Source: Adineta vaga (taxonomy: Eukaryota > Animalia > Rotifera). From it: a stretch of DNA of 64,000 nt. Location: NCBI GenBank assembly GCA_021613535.1, contig CP075495.1, forward strand, positions 12,524,001 to 12,588,000, given 5' to 3'. The position numbers and the translations under genes were made by a program. The notes under the pieces are model-generated. The model worked only from the letters and a program-made list of their open reading frames with translations, was not told the origin of the DNA and did not search any database. Of this stretch, positions 25,291-33,298 are shown piece after piece (positions within the stretch are counted from its first letter, which is position 1; each line of letters starts with the position of its first letter).

Positions 25291-26051
25291 ATGCTAGCTC
25301 GTTGTTCAATCGTTACAAAACGTGCATTTTCAAAAGATTTACTTCCATCACGATGGAAAAGATCAGATTCAAATCGATATTGGCGTGCTCAGTAAGATAT
25401 TAGAATAGAGATCATCAACATGTATTTTCTATTTCAATTTATATTTCAGACATAATTTACCAAAAGATGATGATGAACATGGTCCACTAGCTGATCTACC
25501 TGATTATTCTTATTTAAGTAAATATTTAGTTTTTAATCGTTGCAATGAAAGATTTTCATCAAATTTGATCATTCTGATTATTAGATAATGAACCATCACA
25601 TCTATCAACAGTACAACGTAAAAAATATGATTTTAATGCTTCGATTGTTCGACGTGTTCATGAACTTGATGCAGAATTAACTGAAGCAAAACGATTATAT
25701 GCAGAAAAAATAACATCAGCTATGGCAGATTATGATAAAACGGTTCAAATTGCTAAACATATTAAAACATCGAGAAAAGCAAATATTCAAAGAAAAACAG
25801 AACAACATCAAGCACTTCCATCAATTTCTTCATCGAATGAATATTCATTTCAACCGAATTTACTCAATGCTCTTCGTGAAAACACAACATATAATGAAGC
25901 TTATAAAGAAGTCGTCGATCCAGTTGGTGCTATTGTACCAAATAAACTCATGAGTATCGAACGTCCACCTTATAAACATACAGGTGAACGACGTCGTTTT
26001 CATAAAGTATTTACAATTCGTACACCAAGAGTTCGAATGTTTCCGAAATAG
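25291..26051 (+). CDS. MRPL52: Mitochondrial ribosomal protein mL52 with C-terminal extension, 3 exons
   Basis: Exons 25291-25391, 25450-25517 and 25585-26051 give a basic presequence, then YWRAQHNLPKDDDEHGPLADLPDYSYL...IVRRVHELDAEL, matching the WR..GPLTxLPDWSY motif of mL52. Confidence 0.82.
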
Positions 26052-26249
26052 AACAAAAAATAAAAATACAATAGATAAATCACTTTTATTCGTCAGAAAT
26101 TCCACAAACCAGGAAGAAACACACTAGATATGCATTTTCATATTCTATTCATTGTACGATAAAATATCATGATTGAACATTTGATCTATCATTCTTAAAT
26201 TCATCAGTTTTTCAAGTAGAAAATTATAGTTCATTCGTTCTCTTTTATT

Positions 26250-26885
26250 TTATTTCTTTTCCATATTCAGTAAAGCTTTTAATTGTGTACAAAAATGATA
26301 GATTGGAAAACCAACGACATTAAAATAATCACCATCAATCTTTTTTACTAATGTTGCACCTAACGATTGAATACCATAAGCTCCTGCTTTATTCATTGGT
26401 TCACCTGTTTCAATATAGGCTCGAATTGTTTCATCATCAATAGATCCAAATGTGACATTCGTCGTTTCGAAAAATGTTCTCATCATCATATCTCCTCGAC
26501 ACAGACATACACCAGTACATACTTGATGTGTATTATTTGAAAATATTTTAAGCATACGAAAAGCATCATCTTTATCAGATGGTTTTCCGTATACATCATT
26601 ATCTAATGAACACATTGTATCAGCTCCAATAATAATGACATTTTGTTTCTCATTCTCATTCAATTTCAATTCATTATACACATGACGACATTTATGTTCA
26701 GCAGTATCAATGACATATTGAGAGAGATTTTCTTTATATGATAAAAGATCCAGATCTTCAGCAAAATCAGAAACAATGATCTCAAAATTTAAACCAATCG
26801 ATTGAAGTAATTGTTTACGTTGTGGTGAGCCACTTGCTAAGATAATTCGTTTTTGTTGAAGAATATGTTTCAATGGTTGTAACAT
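26250..26885 (-). CDS. Maf-family dTTP/UTP pyrophosphatase (ASMTL N-terminal domain/YhdE-like), intronless CDS
   Basis: IILASGSPQRKQLL, IIGADT, YGKP, HQVCTGV, GEPMNKAGAYGIQ and GDYFNVVGFP motifs. Confidence 0.95.
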   Translation of the reverse strand: MLQPLKHILQQKRIILASGSPQRKQLLQSIGLNFEIIVSDFAEDLDLLSYKENLSQYVIDTAEHKCRHVYNELKLNENEKQNVIIIGADTMCSLDNDVYGKPSDKDDAFRMLKIFSNNTHQVCTGVCLCRGDMMMRTFFETTNVTFGSIDDETIRAYIETGEPMNKAGAYGIQSLGATLVKKIDGDYFNVVGFPIYHFCTQLKALLNMEKK

Positions 26886-26932
26886 CTAGAAGAAAATATA
26901 AAAATCATCTTTCTATTTCGTTTTTTTTCCTT

Positions 26933-27637
26933 TTAAAAAATACAATAGTTTACAAAAATAATACACAAAGGAATTGTTAAATTATCAAGATCGGACGGAC
27001 TTAAAGTTTCGATTACGGCTGCACTAAAACACAAAACGCAAATTTGCATCAGATAAATTGATTGAAAATCGATCAGAATGCAAATATAGAAAGCAGATGC
27101 AATCGTTCCAGCAATAAAAACAGTTAACAAGCCATTCAAGGACTTAGCTCCATAAATTTTCCTTTGATTACCATAACGAACACCAATCACAGCGGCTAAA
27201 CCATCACCCCATGTTAATGTAGCTATAATAACCGAACCTAATACTGTTTTATAGTAAACAGTACCACATAGGATCATAACAAAATTAAAAAAGAGTGGTC
27301 CACGTAAAAGTTCACTTTTTCCACGTTTTCGTGTCATTATATCAATAACAACATTTTGTTTTTGATTTTGACGTGAATGATATTGTCCTATCCATAGAAG
27401 TATACAAGTCCACAGAATATTTGGAAATATATTTAGATATTTTGAAAGATAACCAGAATCATTATAGAAATAAAGAGCGAGATAAAGTGTACCAGCTCCA
27501 ATATGAGCTACTTTTCGTGAAACTTCATTTGTAATTGCATTTTTACTATTCAAATAATATAATAAAAACACAACACTAAATGTAATACCAGTAACAATTA
27601 TGGAAACAGTTGCATTATGAATAAGAGTGAAAATCAT
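26933..27637 (-). CDS. CTP-dependent phytol/farnesol kinase-like membrane protein (VTE5/FOLK type), intronless
   Basis: SRKVAHIGAG, MTRKRGKSELLRGPLFF, WGDGLAAVIGVRYG, KSLNG and DLDNLTIPL parallel the recalled VTE5 motifs SRKLVHI, VTREG..ELLKGPLFY, GDGIADIMG, KSWAG and DDNISVPL. Confidence 0.85.
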   Translation of the reverse strand: MIFTLIHNATVSIIVTGITFSVVFLLYYLNSKNAITNEVSRKVAHIGAGTLYLALYFYNDSGYLSKYLNIFPNILWTCILLWIGQYHSRQNQKQNVVIDIMTRKRGKSELLRGPLFFNFVMILCGTVYYKTVLGSVIIATLTWGDGLAAVIGVRYGNQRKIYGAKSLNGLLTVFIAGTIASAFYICILIDFQSIYLMQICVLCFSAAVIETLSPSDLDNLTIPLCIIFVNYCIF

Positions 27638-27793
27638 GATCTAGAAAATATAAACAATAGATTAGTAAATCTTAAGAAAACGAATTTATTTAATCGAAAG
27701 TTTTTTTTCTCCTTTAAACATATATTTATTATCGGAAATAACTTTTTTTCAAAGGAAAAACAAAAGAACATTAACAAAAAAATAGTAAATATA

Positions 27794-30700
27794 TCATTTA
27801 TTTCTTTTCAGTGTTCGTTGTTTTTCGGCATGTTCAACAATTTTTTCTTCAACACGTAAACCTTTACGTCGACGAACATCATTCATATATTTTTTTGCAC
27901 GATTTTCAAAATCTGCTTTTTCACCAAAATGAAGGAACTCTTCTTCAGTTTGAGGCTCCCAAAATGGATCAAGTTCAATGATTTCCCAATACGTCTTACC
28001 CGATATTTGTGGCGATGCTAGACCACTCGCTTTCTTACGCATTTCTTCAGCAAATCCAAAACTTTCTGCAACTGGCAATTCTGCTTTTATGATAAATGTA
28101 CTTGTACCTTCTTTCATATCTTCGTTTAATACACGTCCATTACGTTTATTTAAAACTGCATATGCACGACCTAGGAAAGCAAAGAAACAGATGCTATCGA
28201 AAACAATAGTTTTCTTTGTATACTAACCTAATGCTTCAGCATTGACCATAGTTTCACATTTAAACATAGCAGCAACAAGTCGTCTTGGTTGAGAATCGAA
28301 TGCTTTTCGACAACCATCACGAACAGTTGATACTATCTGGCCTGACAATGGTCCTTGTGTAAATACAATCTTTGATTTATCAATAACACGACGAGGTTTT
28401 TGTTGACTTTGTAATGTTGATGATTCATCACTCGTCACACTTAGTGTTTCAATTAGACTCTCTATTTCGTCAACTGGATTAGTTACTGCTGTTGTATTTG
28501 TCGCTGAAAGATCAGTATCATTTGTATCTACTGTTTCTGATGATTCTTCCTGATTACTAACAATTGTATTTATTGTCAATCGTTCAATAATAAATCCCAC
28601 ACCCATCAATGGTTCTTCACATAGAGATCCTTTAGCTGTTGCTAATTGAAAACCATTAACAATACTTAAATCATAATCATCTTTCATTAATGAACTATTT
28701 GTAGTTATTTTTTCTTCATTATTTAATACATTTGCCCAAATGGTTGAACCACGATGTCTATAGATACTATTTGGAATACGATTAAATAATAAATTCGGAC
28801 CAGATTTATGTGGACCAAATGACCAAATTTCATCAACTGTATTTTCATTCCACATCTTATCATTTGCAGCAATAAATTCTTCGTTTAATCGTTCTCGTAA
28901 TTGTCGAATTTCATTAAGTGTTTGATCATTTAATTGAACATTTGTTTTTCTATCATCACGTCCTTGTGCTTGTTCAATGACTGCAAGTAACGAAGTATTT
29001 TCATCTAATAGACAAGTAATACCAGCAGGTAAAGGTACTGCTCGAATTTGAACTATACATTGTTGATTTTGTGTACTTAATTCAATTAATCCATCCTCTA
29101 GATAAGCAAAATTATTCTATCTTGATTTTCTTATGTAGAGATTTAGACAAATACCTAATAGCCACGGTGGTCTTTCTTTCGTTGTTTTATTTGATTTCAT
29201 TTGTTGATGTTGATTTGCGAGTGATTCATTCAAAAAATCGACTTTCGGTGGTGGAATAATAGTTTCACGAAATGGAATAATTGGTGCTGAAACATTGATT
29301 TCAATACGAGCATATCTACAGAAAAAAACATATATGTAGGTATTTCTTATCTTTATTCAAATGATTTACAGACATTTTTGTCAGATCATCGATACATCGT
29401 TGTAAATGTACTTCACCGGCTGTTGAAAGAATATATTCACCAGTATCTTTCAATGTACATTCAACTAATGGATCAGCTTGATTTAATAATTTCATACCAT
29501 GTCGAAGTTGTTTCATTTGAGCTAAACAAATAGTAAAGGAAATTATCATGAGTAAAAAGAAAGCTATGAATATTTACAAGGATTTTTTGTTTCAATTGCT
29601 ACACGAACAATTGGTGAAACTTCAAAATGAAGACCAGTAAATGATGGACAAAAGATATCCGTTGATAATGTTGCTGATTTCAATACAAGAGAATCCAATT
29701 GACCAATAGCTAAATTAAATAATTGATTATTTGATGAAGAAAAAGTTATGATCAAACGTACCAACGATATTTCCAGCAGGTACTTGATCAAGTACGGTAA
29801 ATTCACGACCCATCATTAAATAGAGATCTTGTACAATAAATTCATGTACATGATGAGAAATACTACGTACAGAAAGTTCATTGAGATCCTAAATAATAAA
29901 AGTATCAAATATTGTTCGAATTCAAAACAAAAAAATGATTTGATAATTCTTACTTTTCCCGCAAATAATGATGGATCATGACGTGGACTAAGAACGAAAA
30001 TTTTTTGTCCTCTTTTTAATCGTCCACTGAAGACACGTGCAAATGCAAGAAATACATTTTCATACGTATTTTCATTGGAGTCTGTTTTTGCTATTGCACT
30101 TTCAACACTATTCTCTGTTGTAGATTGAACTGTTTCTCCTATTGGATTTCCATATTCTTCATTTGGTGTTGTTGTTTTATTAAGTTGTTTCTGTTTAAGA
30201 AATTCACGTCGTTGAGCTATATCTTCTGCAGTTAATGGTCTATACGAAAACAAACTTAGCGATTGATAGGTTTTCTATTTATCTAACTTTTGTCGGTTTT
30301 GTGATAGAGCACTATTATGCACAGAGAATAATTTGGAAACACAAACGATCACTGGTGCTTGATCATCACTTGAACAATCGATAAATGCTGTGGAAAGTAA
30401 ATTTCCCAAGCTAATAATCAAACTTGATTTAGAAAAAAATCTTACCCTGTTTCAAACGTTGTGTTTCTGGTAATAATGTATCAAATCGACGACTTTTATT
30501 ACACATTAATTGTTCGATTTTATCTGTATTCAATGCTTTTGGATTTGGAAGTTGAGTAACAACCATATCTATATAATTATAAAAAGTACAATCTATGAAA
30601 TTCTTTCGATTCAATGAAAATTTCACTTACCGAAAACAGCTGAAGCTACAGGTAACCATTGATTGAAAAGTAAATGTAATGGAACACATGGATCACTATG

Positions 30701-32149
30701 TCCAATATCTCGTGGAATTAATTTTGCACCAATAGATGCGACAATTTTTTCAAGCTTTTCATTATCACTAAAAATCGAAATTTATTATTCAACTAGAAAA
30801 AGAATTTAAACAAATACAAACCGTCGTGTAATAATAGTTTCATAAACACTCCAAATATTTTCAAGAATAAATTGAACAAACATTGGTTTTTGACCTTTAC
30901 TCTACAAATGAAAAAATAAAGACAATCAATTTATTCAAAATATGCTTTTTCTTCAATTGATTGATTACCTGTGCTCCTTTAAAAACTCGTTTGCTTTTTC
31001 TATCGAAATAAAAATCACCCCATAGAGTTTTCATTAATACTTCGCGTTTAATTGATAATTTTTTTGCATATAAATCTGCGAAATGATGAATTCTATTGAT
31101 ATAAAAAGAATATATTTCAACTGGAAACATGAACTTCAATCATGATTTACCCAAAACCCCATCCATCTAATGCACTAGCAAATAGAACATTATTATAATG
31201 TGGTGAAAAACACATTTGAGCTTCATTTCGCGCCCAATCATCATCACCATCATCAACAATATCATTATTTGTTTCTTTCTTAATCTAAATAAATCATAGA
31301 TAAGTTTCAATTAAACATTAGATTTTGATATCTACTTCTTCATTTGCTTCTTGATCAACCTACAGCAAGCAACAATAGAGTATTTATTCAGAACAAATTC
31401 TTTCTCTTACACTTTTTTCTAATAGTAACGATGTAAATTGTTCAGCAACAACTGCATTTATATTTTCTAATATCCCTCGTATATGTAAATAAGCTTCGAG
31501 TGGTGTCATTTTCAATCCAATGATTAGACGATCAATTTTATTGAGAACTAAAATAATACGTAAATGTTCTAGCCATGCTTGTCGAAGAGCAGCTAACGTC
31601 TAAATTAAAGTTTTATTGTTTTATTAATCCATCATTGAAATGTAATAGTCATTACTTGAGGACAAACGCCTTCAACAACATCAACAAGAATAATTGCACC
31701 ATCACAAAGACGAACAGCAGTAGAAACTTCGGATGAAAAATCAACGTGTCCAGGAGTATCAATCAGATTAATTAAATACTTCTTATCCTCTAAATAAATT
31801 TGATCAACTATTTTCGTTATAAGAATTATCGATTAAATGAGGTAAACCTTTCTCATGTACGAGTGAAACAGCACTGGATTTCATTGTAATACCTCGCACT
31901 TGTTCAGCTTCTAAACTATCCATTAAACGTAACTACAGAAAATGATTTATGATTTCTCGATAATAATTTCTGTATATTTACTTTGCCGGCTAATCGTGTG
32001 GATATAATTCCATTCGAAGCAAGTAAATCATCAGCTAATGTTGTTTTACCATGATCGACATGCGCCAAGATACATATATTACGAATTAATTCAGTATTTT
32101 CTTGTAATTCAGAAAGAACCTCGGATGGATAAGTTATAGTCGGTGGCAT
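27794..32149 (-). CDS. EFL1: Elongation factor-like GTPase 1 (EFL1/Ria1), multi-exon
   Basis: [78 protein letters not shown] and the C-terminal [14 protein letters not shown]. Confidence 0.96.
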
Positions 32150-32443: not shown

Positions 32444-33298
32444 TCATTTTCGATACCATTTCTGTAAGGTATCATAACGTTTTATTTTTCTTTGTAATTG
32501 TAGAACACCATAGAGTAATGCTTCTGCACTTGGTGGACAACCAGGAACATAAATATCTACGGGAATAATACGATCACATCCGCGTACCTAATATGAGAAG
32601 AAAGAAAACGAATATTTTTAAGAATGCTAGTTTGAAATAGATAAGAATTCAATAACATACGACTGCATACGAATAATGATAATAACCACCACCATTAGCA
32701 CATGAACCCATAGATATAACCCATTTTGGATGAGGCATTTGCTCATAAAGTCGTCGAATAGCTATAGAAATATTAGTTGTGAATAAAAAAATTCTTCTTT
32801 TTATGTTGAAAATCTTTGTTTACCTGGTGCCATTTTATTCGTGAGTGTACCAGCAACAATCATAAGATCAGCTTGACGTGGACTAGCACGAAAGACAACA
32901 CCAAATCGATCCATATCATAACTAAAATTAATTAAGAATAATAACTAAAATCAAATGAATAGATATCGAGAAATTTACCGTGGTGCAGCCATGTGCATCA
33001 TTTCTACGGCACAACAAGCAAGACCAAATGTCAATGGCCAAATAGATCCACGTCGAATTAAATTTTGTACATCATCCAAACGAGCTAATGCAACTTCAAC
33101 TTTACTATCACCATAATGTTTGCCTGGTGCATTCTTATAAGGTGATAAATTTGTTACTAAGTTCTGTTCTTGTGCATTTTGAATCGGTGGATTAGTTGTT
33201 TGTTCAACAACAGATGATGCAGTAGCTGCTCCACGATTCGATATAATAGATGGTAGAGTAAGTCGAGAAAATGGCAAAGAATAACGTAAGAGTGCCAT
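32444..33298 (-). CDS. NDUFS7: NADH dehydrogenase Fe-S protein 7 (PSST), 4 exons
   Basis: Presequence followed by [53 protein letters not shown] and WYRK*. Confidence 0.97.

Follow-up and report, generated by a model that had tools for sequence, protein, structure and literature searches.

A bacterial-type polyprenol kinase gene inside a conserved native gene cluster in a bdelloid rotifer, Adineta vaga, with likely operon-type expression

A stretch of 64,000 nt from the genome of a bdelloid rotifer, Adineta vaga (hereafter the window, to which positions refer unless another contig is named) carries a short gene for a predicted isoprenoid-alcohol kinase, set between the genes for EFL1 and Maf. 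An earlier note had picked out this reading frame of 234 amino acids, and we confirmed it at 26933..27637 on the minus strand, the strand that also holds its neighbors Maf, EFL1 and NDUFS7. The kinase gene is present as a single copy in the genome, on a chromosome-scale contig. The locus comprises the following features, each given with the evidence on which it is drawn.

26933..27637, minus strand: kinase coding sequence, intronless, 234 amino acids plus stop, from ATG to TAA (open reading frame (ORF) list, homologues, motifs and RNA contigs free of joints).
27641..27646, minus strand: TTCTAG acceptor 3 nt 5′ of the kinase ATG, a probable spliced leader (SL) trans-splice site (RNA contig ends; the hexamer is that of the Maf acceptor).
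27638..27793, minus strand: spacer of 156 nt between EFL1 and the kinase, with the EFL1 3′ untranslated region (UTR) and poly(A) region (EFL1 contig ends).
26921..26932, minus strand: 3′ UTR of the kinase mRNA, very short, with an A-run at its end (contigs of RNA runs X1, X3 and X6 stop at 26921).
26886..26891, minus strand: TTCTAG acceptor of Maf, with the SL joined immediately 5′ of the ATG (loose end of an X3 contig).
26250..26885, minus strand: Maf coding sequence (dTTP/UTP pyrophosphatase-type), native, intronless (PF02545, E 1.5e-59).
27794..32149, minus strand: EFL1 (elongation factor-like GTPase 1), native, multi-exon, upstream of the kinase (Pfam matches on exons; 15 introns removed in RNA).
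32444..33298, minus strand: NDUFS7 (Oxidored_q6-type), the first gene of the cluster (ORF; PF01058 on orthologues).

Transcription of the locus was followed in four RNA runs (X1, X3, X5 and X6, from three studies), whose assembled contigs were mapped onto positions 25600-31500. These runs are RNA; their contigs lack 15 EFL1 introns (GT..AG, minus strand). The kinase was covered in the four runs at 26921-27135 and 27204-27642 without any splice joint, while the EFL1 introns were removed in the same runs; the descriptions of the gene as intronless and as expressed both held. Since Maf is intronless too, the lack of introns is not peculiar to the kinase within the cluster. The GC content of the kinase (30.4%) was close to that of the window (30.3%). 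Pairwise dN/dS (the ratio of nonsynonymous to synonymous substitution rates) for the kinase ranged from 0.09 to 0.38, about twice the Maf values, with dS near saturation; the kinase is under purifying selection.

All the motifs listed in the earlier note (SRKxxH, TRxxxxxELLxGPLF, GDG, KS and DNxxxP) are present and fall on invariant or nearly invariant columns of a 73-sequence family alignment that takes in bacteria, archaea, algae and plants. They read SRKVAH at residues 40-45, TRKRGKSELLRGPLF at 102-116, GDG at 144-146, KS at 165-166 and DNLTIP at 218-223. The kinase carries the consensus residue in each of the seven invariant columns (H45, G113, G144, D145, G146, E210 and N219) and in 12 of 12 near-invariant ones, which include R41, K42, R103, E109, L111, P114, K165 and D218, and it has the conserved motif set of the family (RK..H; R.....E.L.GP; GDG.A...G; K..(E/D)G; E; DN...P). 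A word-indexed search returned 42 bdelloid-type proteins at 56-69% identity, from Adineta ricciae, A. steineri, Rotaria spp. and many environmental contigs. Beyond bdelloids it returned proteins of Ignavibacteria, Chlorobi-like bacteria, KSB1 and Chloroflexi at 25-39% identity, the closest being those of Ignavibacteria and Chlorobi, with identities of 35-39% (E about 1e-34 to 1e-37). When 1.84 billion representatives were searched exhaustively by profile, one bdelloid cluster ranked first and a cluster with Candidatus Thermochlorobacter aerophilum as its named member came next (E 1e-48), followed at later ranks by archaea, algal transcripts (Heterosigma, Phaeothamnion, Euglena longa and MMETSP entries) and land-plant VTE5. 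Matches named 'diacylglycerol/polyprenol kinase family protein' included proteins of KSB1, Micrarchaeia and Hodarchaeota, and the named plant matches were a Gastrolobium 'probable phytol kinase 1' and a Riccia 'Phytol kinase'; the automatic names given to orthologues in public proteomes are dolichol kinase, phytol kinase and phosphatidate cytidylyltransferase. Judged by homology and motifs, the protein belongs to the phytol/polyprenol ("diacylglycerol/polyprenol") kinase family. The exact protein sequence had no record in public contigs, and patterns run on a bacterial genome collection met four distant loci only, because the peptide patterns are specific to bdelloids.

An AlphaFold model built with the family alignment as input (predicted local distance difference test (pLDDT) 92.8, predicted template modelling score (pTM) 0.90) has about eight helices, the first starting at residue 2. 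The best natural structural matches to this model were CdsA and CarS, both CTP-using intramembrane enzymes. Foldseek ranked CdsA first (4q2e, E 0.16, probability 0.90), and VIA-align gave Z 8.1 for CarS (5guf, root-mean-square deviation 2.5 over 101 aligned residues) and Z 7.7 for CdsA, a range of Z that helical proteins can reach by chance. A sequence search of the PDB found no solved relative of the kinase. PF01148 (CTP_transf_1), searched genome-wide, marked only CDS1-like genes, and precomputed PF01148 assignments exist for few bacterial relatives; a weak PF01148 match on contig 3 was set aside because no credible gene lies at the site.

The gene had been described as being of the VTE5/FOLK type, and this stood in part: the protein belongs with the short phytol/polyprenol kinases, but a place in the VTE5 clade was rejected. 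The plant VTE5/FOLK enzymes, to our knowledge the sole family members of known activity, share the family and the catalytic motifs with the rotifer kinase. They differ in their length of about 300-390 amino acids and an N-terminal extension of 70-150 amino acids, so that they align with the 234-residue kinase from residue 73-156 onward, and they form a clade with Chloroflexi-type sequences. In a careful maximum-likelihood (ML) tree of 56 rows (LG+C20+F+G4 with posterior mean site frequencies, PMSF), a 100/100 branch parted the bdelloid kinases from plant VTE5/FOLK, and the approximately unbiased (AU) test rejected a clade of bdelloid and land-plant VTE5 sequences (p 1.4e-6). On these sequence comparisons the kinase is not an orthologue of plant VTE5/FOLK.

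In the same tree, the bdelloid kinases grouped together with 100/100 support, their stem being long at 0.91 substitutions per site. They were nested in a wider clade, also at 100/100, whose other members came from Chlorobi, Ignavibacteria, KSB1, archaea and a second group of algae; outside it fell plant VTE5 and the Chloroflexi-type sequences. FastTree placed the bdelloids with Chlorobi and Ignavibacteria (support 93). Proteins of these two bacterial groups are closest to the kinase both in similarity and in architecture, being 224-239 amino acids long with no N-terminal extension. Two fast-evolving environmental kinases (P0424 and P0425, 45-49% identity) were also nested in the bdelloid clade. 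Their genes lie on metagenome contigs of higher GC content, 38-41% (L026:4582-5268 and L027:1001-1705), and L026 showed no Maf within the 583 nt downstream of its kinase.

The order NDUFS7 > EFL1 > kinase > Maf was identical in A. vaga, in A. ricciae and in four assemblies of Rotaria sp. Silwood-1. In the window, the EFL1 exons carry PF25118 (EFL1) and PF00679 (EFG_C), the ORF of the N-terminal exon begins at 32149 and the final exon ends at 27794; NDUFS7 lies upstream, 294 nt from the EFL1 ATG, and the kinase stop and the Maf ATG are 47 nt apart. The EFL1 models of A. ricciae and Rotaria are 1130-1132 amino acids long with GTP_EFTU, EFL1 and EFG_C domains, and PF01058 was found on the NDUFS7 orthologues of A. 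ricciae, Rotaria and Didymodactylos. The spacers are comparably tight in A. ricciae (EFL1-kinase 99 nt, kinase-Maf 49 nt), and the kinase-Maf spacer of Rotaria measures 42-44 nt. In about 18 further bdelloid-derived assemblies, kinase and Maf matches on contigs of equal length suggest the same pairing on one contig. The nearest non-bdelloid matches of Maf are animal proteins at 47-52% identity, and EFL1 and NDUFS7 are intron-rich, in keeping with the earlier proposal that the kinase was captured inside a native cluster. As for EFL1 and Maf adjoining each other without the kinase, a point raised in the same note, A. ricciae and Rotaria keep the kinase between them. In Didymodactylos carnosus (L022:7981-11200 and L023), a species sampled in PMC7943196 to span the deepest divergences known in the class, NDUFS7 is followed by a gap of 1.8 kb and then by an intronless Maf coding sequence; this interval, the one locus searched in that species, showed no similarity to EFL1 or the kinase. 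The annotated Maf model of Didymodactylos has 268 amino acids, with extra upstream exons of unknown origin. Brachionus Maf is intron-bearing and has different neighbors.

Two word-indexed searches returned no kinase homologue from a non-bdelloid animal among their named matches, and none from Brachionus or Didymodactylos, although for Maf the same database gave matches from Brachionus calyciflorus and Didymodactylos carnosus as well as from many further animals. The gene order shared by Adineta and Rotaria implies that the kinase was acquired before these lineages split. There is good support for horizontal acquisition prior to the Adineta-Rotaria split, and the earlier proposal of a foreign origin is borne out by the nesting among non-metazoan sequences together with the lack of non-bdelloid animal homologues in these searches. 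A bdelloid ancestor would thus have gained the kinase prior to that divergence, with a bacterium from the Chlorobi/Ignavibacteria group as the most likely donor and an alga as a less likely one, and the gene would later have taken on the base composition of its host while evolving under purifying selection. Contamination is ruled out by the linkage to native intron-bearing genes and the conservation across species. Joint transfer of kinase and Maf as a piece of a bacterial operon was rejected as well, given the animal affinity of Maf and the finding that Maf does not adjoin the kinase in the Thermochlorobacter or Ignavibacteria contigs.

Three other accounts of what the gene is and where it came from were weighed. 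One makes the gene the dolichol kinase of the rotifer itself, perhaps through xenologous replacement of DOLK; this would agree with the common superfamily and with the UniRef automatic name 'Dolichol kinase' for the A. ricciae and A. steineri orthologues. Animal DOLK/SEC59 indeed shares the C-terminal GD..A..G, K..EG and DN motifs with the kinase, but usual DOLK proteins are much longer, the window protein having half their length. Moreover, when the family profile was run over the whole genome it marked three places: the window gene, an ORF on contig 2 (described below) and a canonical multi-exon DOLK-like gene on contig 6 (about 3684400-3685730, plus strand), which has DIDNLTLPI among its exon motifs and the DOLK-type C-terminal motif (..GD..AS..G....WPG.K.T.EG..), where the window kinase has GDGLAAVIGVRYGNQRKIYGAKSLNG instead. 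Because this separate gene exists, the window gene is an additional kinase and not the dolichol kinase of the animal, and we regard the replacement account as extremely improbable. An ancient eukaryotic or animal gene, passed on by vertical descent and missing today from almost every other animal through loss, is hardly more credible. Algal and plant family members do exist, and the long bdelloid stem blurs the placement; against this, the kinase is nested among prokaryotes in the ML tree, it is intronless next to an EFL1 gene with at least 15 introns, it is missing at the NDUFS7-Maf locus of the deepest bdelloid sampled, and no non-bdelloid animal appeared among the named matches despite the Brachionus and Didymodactylos proteomes in the database. 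A stronger candidate for the donor, though still an unlikely one, is a eukaryotic alga belonging to the second and non-plant group of algal sequences (the Heterosigma, Phaeothamnion, Euglena longa and MMETSP transcripts). Algae are bdelloid food, their proteins are short as well (223-264 amino acids), and the AU test did not reject a bdelloid and algal clade (p 0.149). Nevertheless, the algal clade was monophyletic (98/96) with the bdelloids outside it, FastTree favored the bacterial placement, and similarity to Chlorobi/Ignavibacteria was higher (35-39%, 1e-48) than to algae (25-31%, about 1e-28).

Several observations weigh against a Chlorobi/Ignavibacteria-type foreign kinase, as do others, given below, against its mode of expression. 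The sister group of the bdelloid clade is a polytomy in the ML tree, and the AU result for algae bears on the donor in the same sense. Absence from other animals rests on word-indexed searches in which many representatives were unnamed. The kinase had no match in Pfam (to E 10) or NCBIfam (to E 1), so that its family membership rests on homology to automatically named proteins; the structural matches to the model lie within the chance range of Z for helical proteins.

We next turn to the transcripts, in which the clearest evidence concerns Maf. Kinase contigs of X1, X3 and X6 stopped at an A-run 12 nt past the stop codon, and there was no RNA coverage at 26888-26920 in the four runs. On the far side of this gap, the Maf contig of X3 ended at 26887 and continued as a loose end, CTTGGTAAG, whose reverse complement is CTTACCAAG; with the shared AG this becomes CTTACCAAGAG, the 3′ end of the SL (a 9-nt tail plus AG). 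The rotifer SL sequence was checked by a genome count of TGCTTATTACAACTTACCAAGAG: SL RNA genes, in which TGCTTATTACAACTTACCAAGAG is followed by GTAAAT, occur in 59 copies, against 0 for a control pattern. Many of these genes stand in inverted, divergent pairs with a distance of about 154 bp, and they cluster on contigs 2, 5 and 6; an example lies at contig 1: 2551160-2551336. Maf is SL-trans-spliced at TTCTAG/ATG, a site 33 nt past the point where the kinase mRNA ends, and kinase and Maf give separate mature mRNAs. An in-frame kinase-Maf fusion through a 68-nt intron, as in a fused model of Rotaria sp. Silwood2 (P0038), was rejected, the joint being absent from the four runs. One X1 contig has a 255-nt loose end at 26825, inside Maf, that maps to contig 1: 1801961-1801990; as this is another chromosome, the contig is probably chimeric.

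The 5′ side of the kinase reads TTCTAG/ATCATG, with a hexamer identical to the Maf acceptor, and in X3 and X6 the kinase contigs break off two bases into the acceptor AG, at 27642, beyond which 3 and 5 letters are unaligned. In A. ricciae, Rotaria and environmental bdelloid contigs, both ATGs likewise have a pyrimidine-rich AG acceptor 0-3 nt on their 5′ side; the one of the kinase in particular is kept in A. ricciae and Rotaria and in L026 and L038. Contigs of EFL1 ended at 27755 (X1), 27770 (X5) and 27662 (X6), all of them 20-130 nt before the kinase acceptor. Adineta and Rotaria share a conserved sequence of some 85 nt immediately past the EFL1 stop, which nearly fills the 99-nt spacer of A. 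ricciae; in the window (27710-27793, minus strand) this sequence runs TTGTTAATGTTCTTTTGTTTTT ... TTTGAAAAAAA ... TTATTT.CGATAA. It is probably a 3′-end processing element.

With the kinase mRNA ending at 26921 in these runs, roughly 33 nt remain up to the Maf acceptor (26887/6), too little space for a separate Maf promoter outside the kinase, so that transcription of Maf must start inside the kinase or upstream of it. The kinase, third gene in a conserved, co-oriented and tight cluster, would have its mRNA produced in the way of Maf's, with the SL joined at its own TTCTAG acceptor, and transcription of both genes would begin upstream, from the EFL1 promoter or a promoter of the cluster. With such a start, the foreign gene would have needed just an acceptor and a 3′-end signal in order to be expressed. 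A polycistronic unit resolved by the SL is the most economical reading, and promoter-free expression of the kinase is likely. The earlier suggestion of a promoter-free route to domestication thus remains plausible: the SL on Maf was seen directly, the same acceptor precedes the kinase and A. ricciae has its 99-nt spacer, whereas the SL on the kinase and a polycistronic precursor were not observed. Taken as a whole, the explanation that a foreign kinase of Chlorobi/Ignavibacteria-type origin is expressed in operon fashion through the SL and would serve isoprenoid-alcohol salvage seems to us probable, with real room for error.

The chief competitor accepts the same foreign kinase but gives it a compact promoter of its own, in the EFL1 3′ UTR and spacer or in the last EFL1 exon, with the SL merely trimming the 5′ end, as in nematode SL1-type genes, and the tight spacing reflecting genome compaction. 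Trans-splicing by itself is no proof of an operon. The SL was not seen on the kinase mRNA itself, the 3 and 5 unaligned letters being all that extends past 27642, and X5 has an 11-nt non-SL tail, ATACGTGTCGT, at 27637, beyond the kinase ATG, which is possibly adapter. No contig of the four runs bridges EFL1 and the kinase or the kinase and Maf, although assembled contigs drop rare precursors. Rotaria sp. Silwood-1 (L014:6772-8000) retains the kinase behind an AT-rich EFL1-kinase spacer of 1.2 kb with no convincing ORF, in which there could be room for a promoter. The contigs of EFL1 and of the kinase have unequal per-contig word depths, contig depth being a poor measure, and a 2021 review (PMC7986045) states that operons are unreported in rotifers. 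In contrast, the 99-nt spacer of A. ricciae consists for some 85 nt of the conserved EFL1 3′ element, and the Maf spacer is short in all species examined (33-47 nt; 49 nt in A. ricciae), with no room for an external Maf promoter; co-transcription through the 3′ end of the kinase therefore occurs in the cluster in any case. We judge a separate kinase promoter to be unlikely on balance, and prefer operon-type expression. Two Logan contigs from other bdelloids are of interest beside this question: L037 (1478 nt) holds kinase and Maf with an unspliced spacer, its end falling 12-18 nt past an AATAAA that lies downstream of Maf, and L038 (1968 nt) holds the last EFL1 exon, kinase and Maf with unspliced spacers. 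Both would be polycistronic precursors if the runs are RNA.

With regard to function, the characterized plant members of the family use CTP and phosphorylate phytol or farnesol/geranylgeraniol. By analogy with these enzymes, from which its substrate and nucleotide are inferred, the rotifer protein would be a short multi-pass membrane isoprenoid-alcohol kinase, acting on phytol, geranylgeraniol or farnesol in free form, supplied by diet or turnover. The homologue of Thermochlorobacter, a phototrophic member of the Chlorobi, lies directly downstream of a UbiA-family prenyltransferase, a neighbor that fits isoprenoid-alcohol recycling; the gene context of the Ignavibacteria homologue was uninformative. 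The A. vaga genome has one DUF92/TMEM19 gene (contig 3: 11551029-11551898), of the family of the plant phytyl-phosphate kinase VTE6, which possibly supplies a second kinase step leading to prenyl diphosphates, so that phytol, geranylgeraniol or farnesol could conceivably be salvaged in two steps. We offer only tentatively, as a possibility that may well prove wrong, the fuller proposal that bdelloids have genuine SL-resolved operons, that a bacterial kinase was domesticated as an internal cistron of one of them, and that with DUF92/TMEM19 it turns dietary phytol, geranylgeraniol and farnesol into prenyl diphosphates. We know of no phytol, farnesol or geranylgeraniol kinase gene in animals, and our literature search found no paper linking a phytol or polyprenol kinase to bdelloids. 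A conserved, expressed kinase of bacterial type would give an animal that feeds by grazing algae and bacteria an added capacity for lipid salvage.

Among known systems, the short bacterial and archaeal kinases (Thermochlorobacter RFM23285.1 and proteins from Ignavibacteria metagenome-assembled genomes) resemble the rotifer protein most, in length (224-239 amino acids), motif set and top similarity. These proteins are annotated as phytol kinase or phosphatidate cytidylyltransferase, the activity of the bacterial ones being known by annotation only. The rotifer gene differs from this group in lying in an animal chromosome, with the GC content of its host, an acceptor 5′ of the ATG and a eukaryotic 3′ end. 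As for its setting, a foreign gene within an SL operon has been shown in Hydra, where flp likewise lies downstream of a native gene in an SL trans-splicing animal (PMC3273482). The Hydra operon is bicistronic and experimentally demonstrated, whereas the polycistronic RNA of the rotifer is inferred; unlike flp, the kinase is internal to a cluster of four genes found in two bdelloid families. Horizontal gene transfer is well documented in bdelloids (PMC3499245, PMC4632278, PMC5916493), and the kinase resembles the genes so acquired in being non-metazoan, expressed and conserved across species, but it differs from them in general by sitting among core native genes and not next to other foreign genes. 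As both bdelloid gene transfer and operon capture in Hydra were already established, the locus adds an instructive new case to them but no new principle. It offers a compact, testable example of a foreign gene expressed, as we suppose, without its own promoter in an SL trans-splicing animal, and the trans-splicing of Maf 33-47 nt behind the preceding gene is concrete evidence for operon-like units in rotifers; a 2025 chaetognath paper reports no operons for this phylum.

The remaining place marked by the family profile was a second intronless ORF of the polyprenol kinase superfamily, of 378 amino acids, on contig 2 (15372089-15373225, plus strand). Its match was limited to the C-terminal 86 residues (hhalign probability 97%), where GDGLAEPIG is kept and DN is replaced by DS. 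Its look-alikes in the protein atlas were 'Dolichol kinase' clusters, mostly from Oomycota, and it may be another foreign gene.

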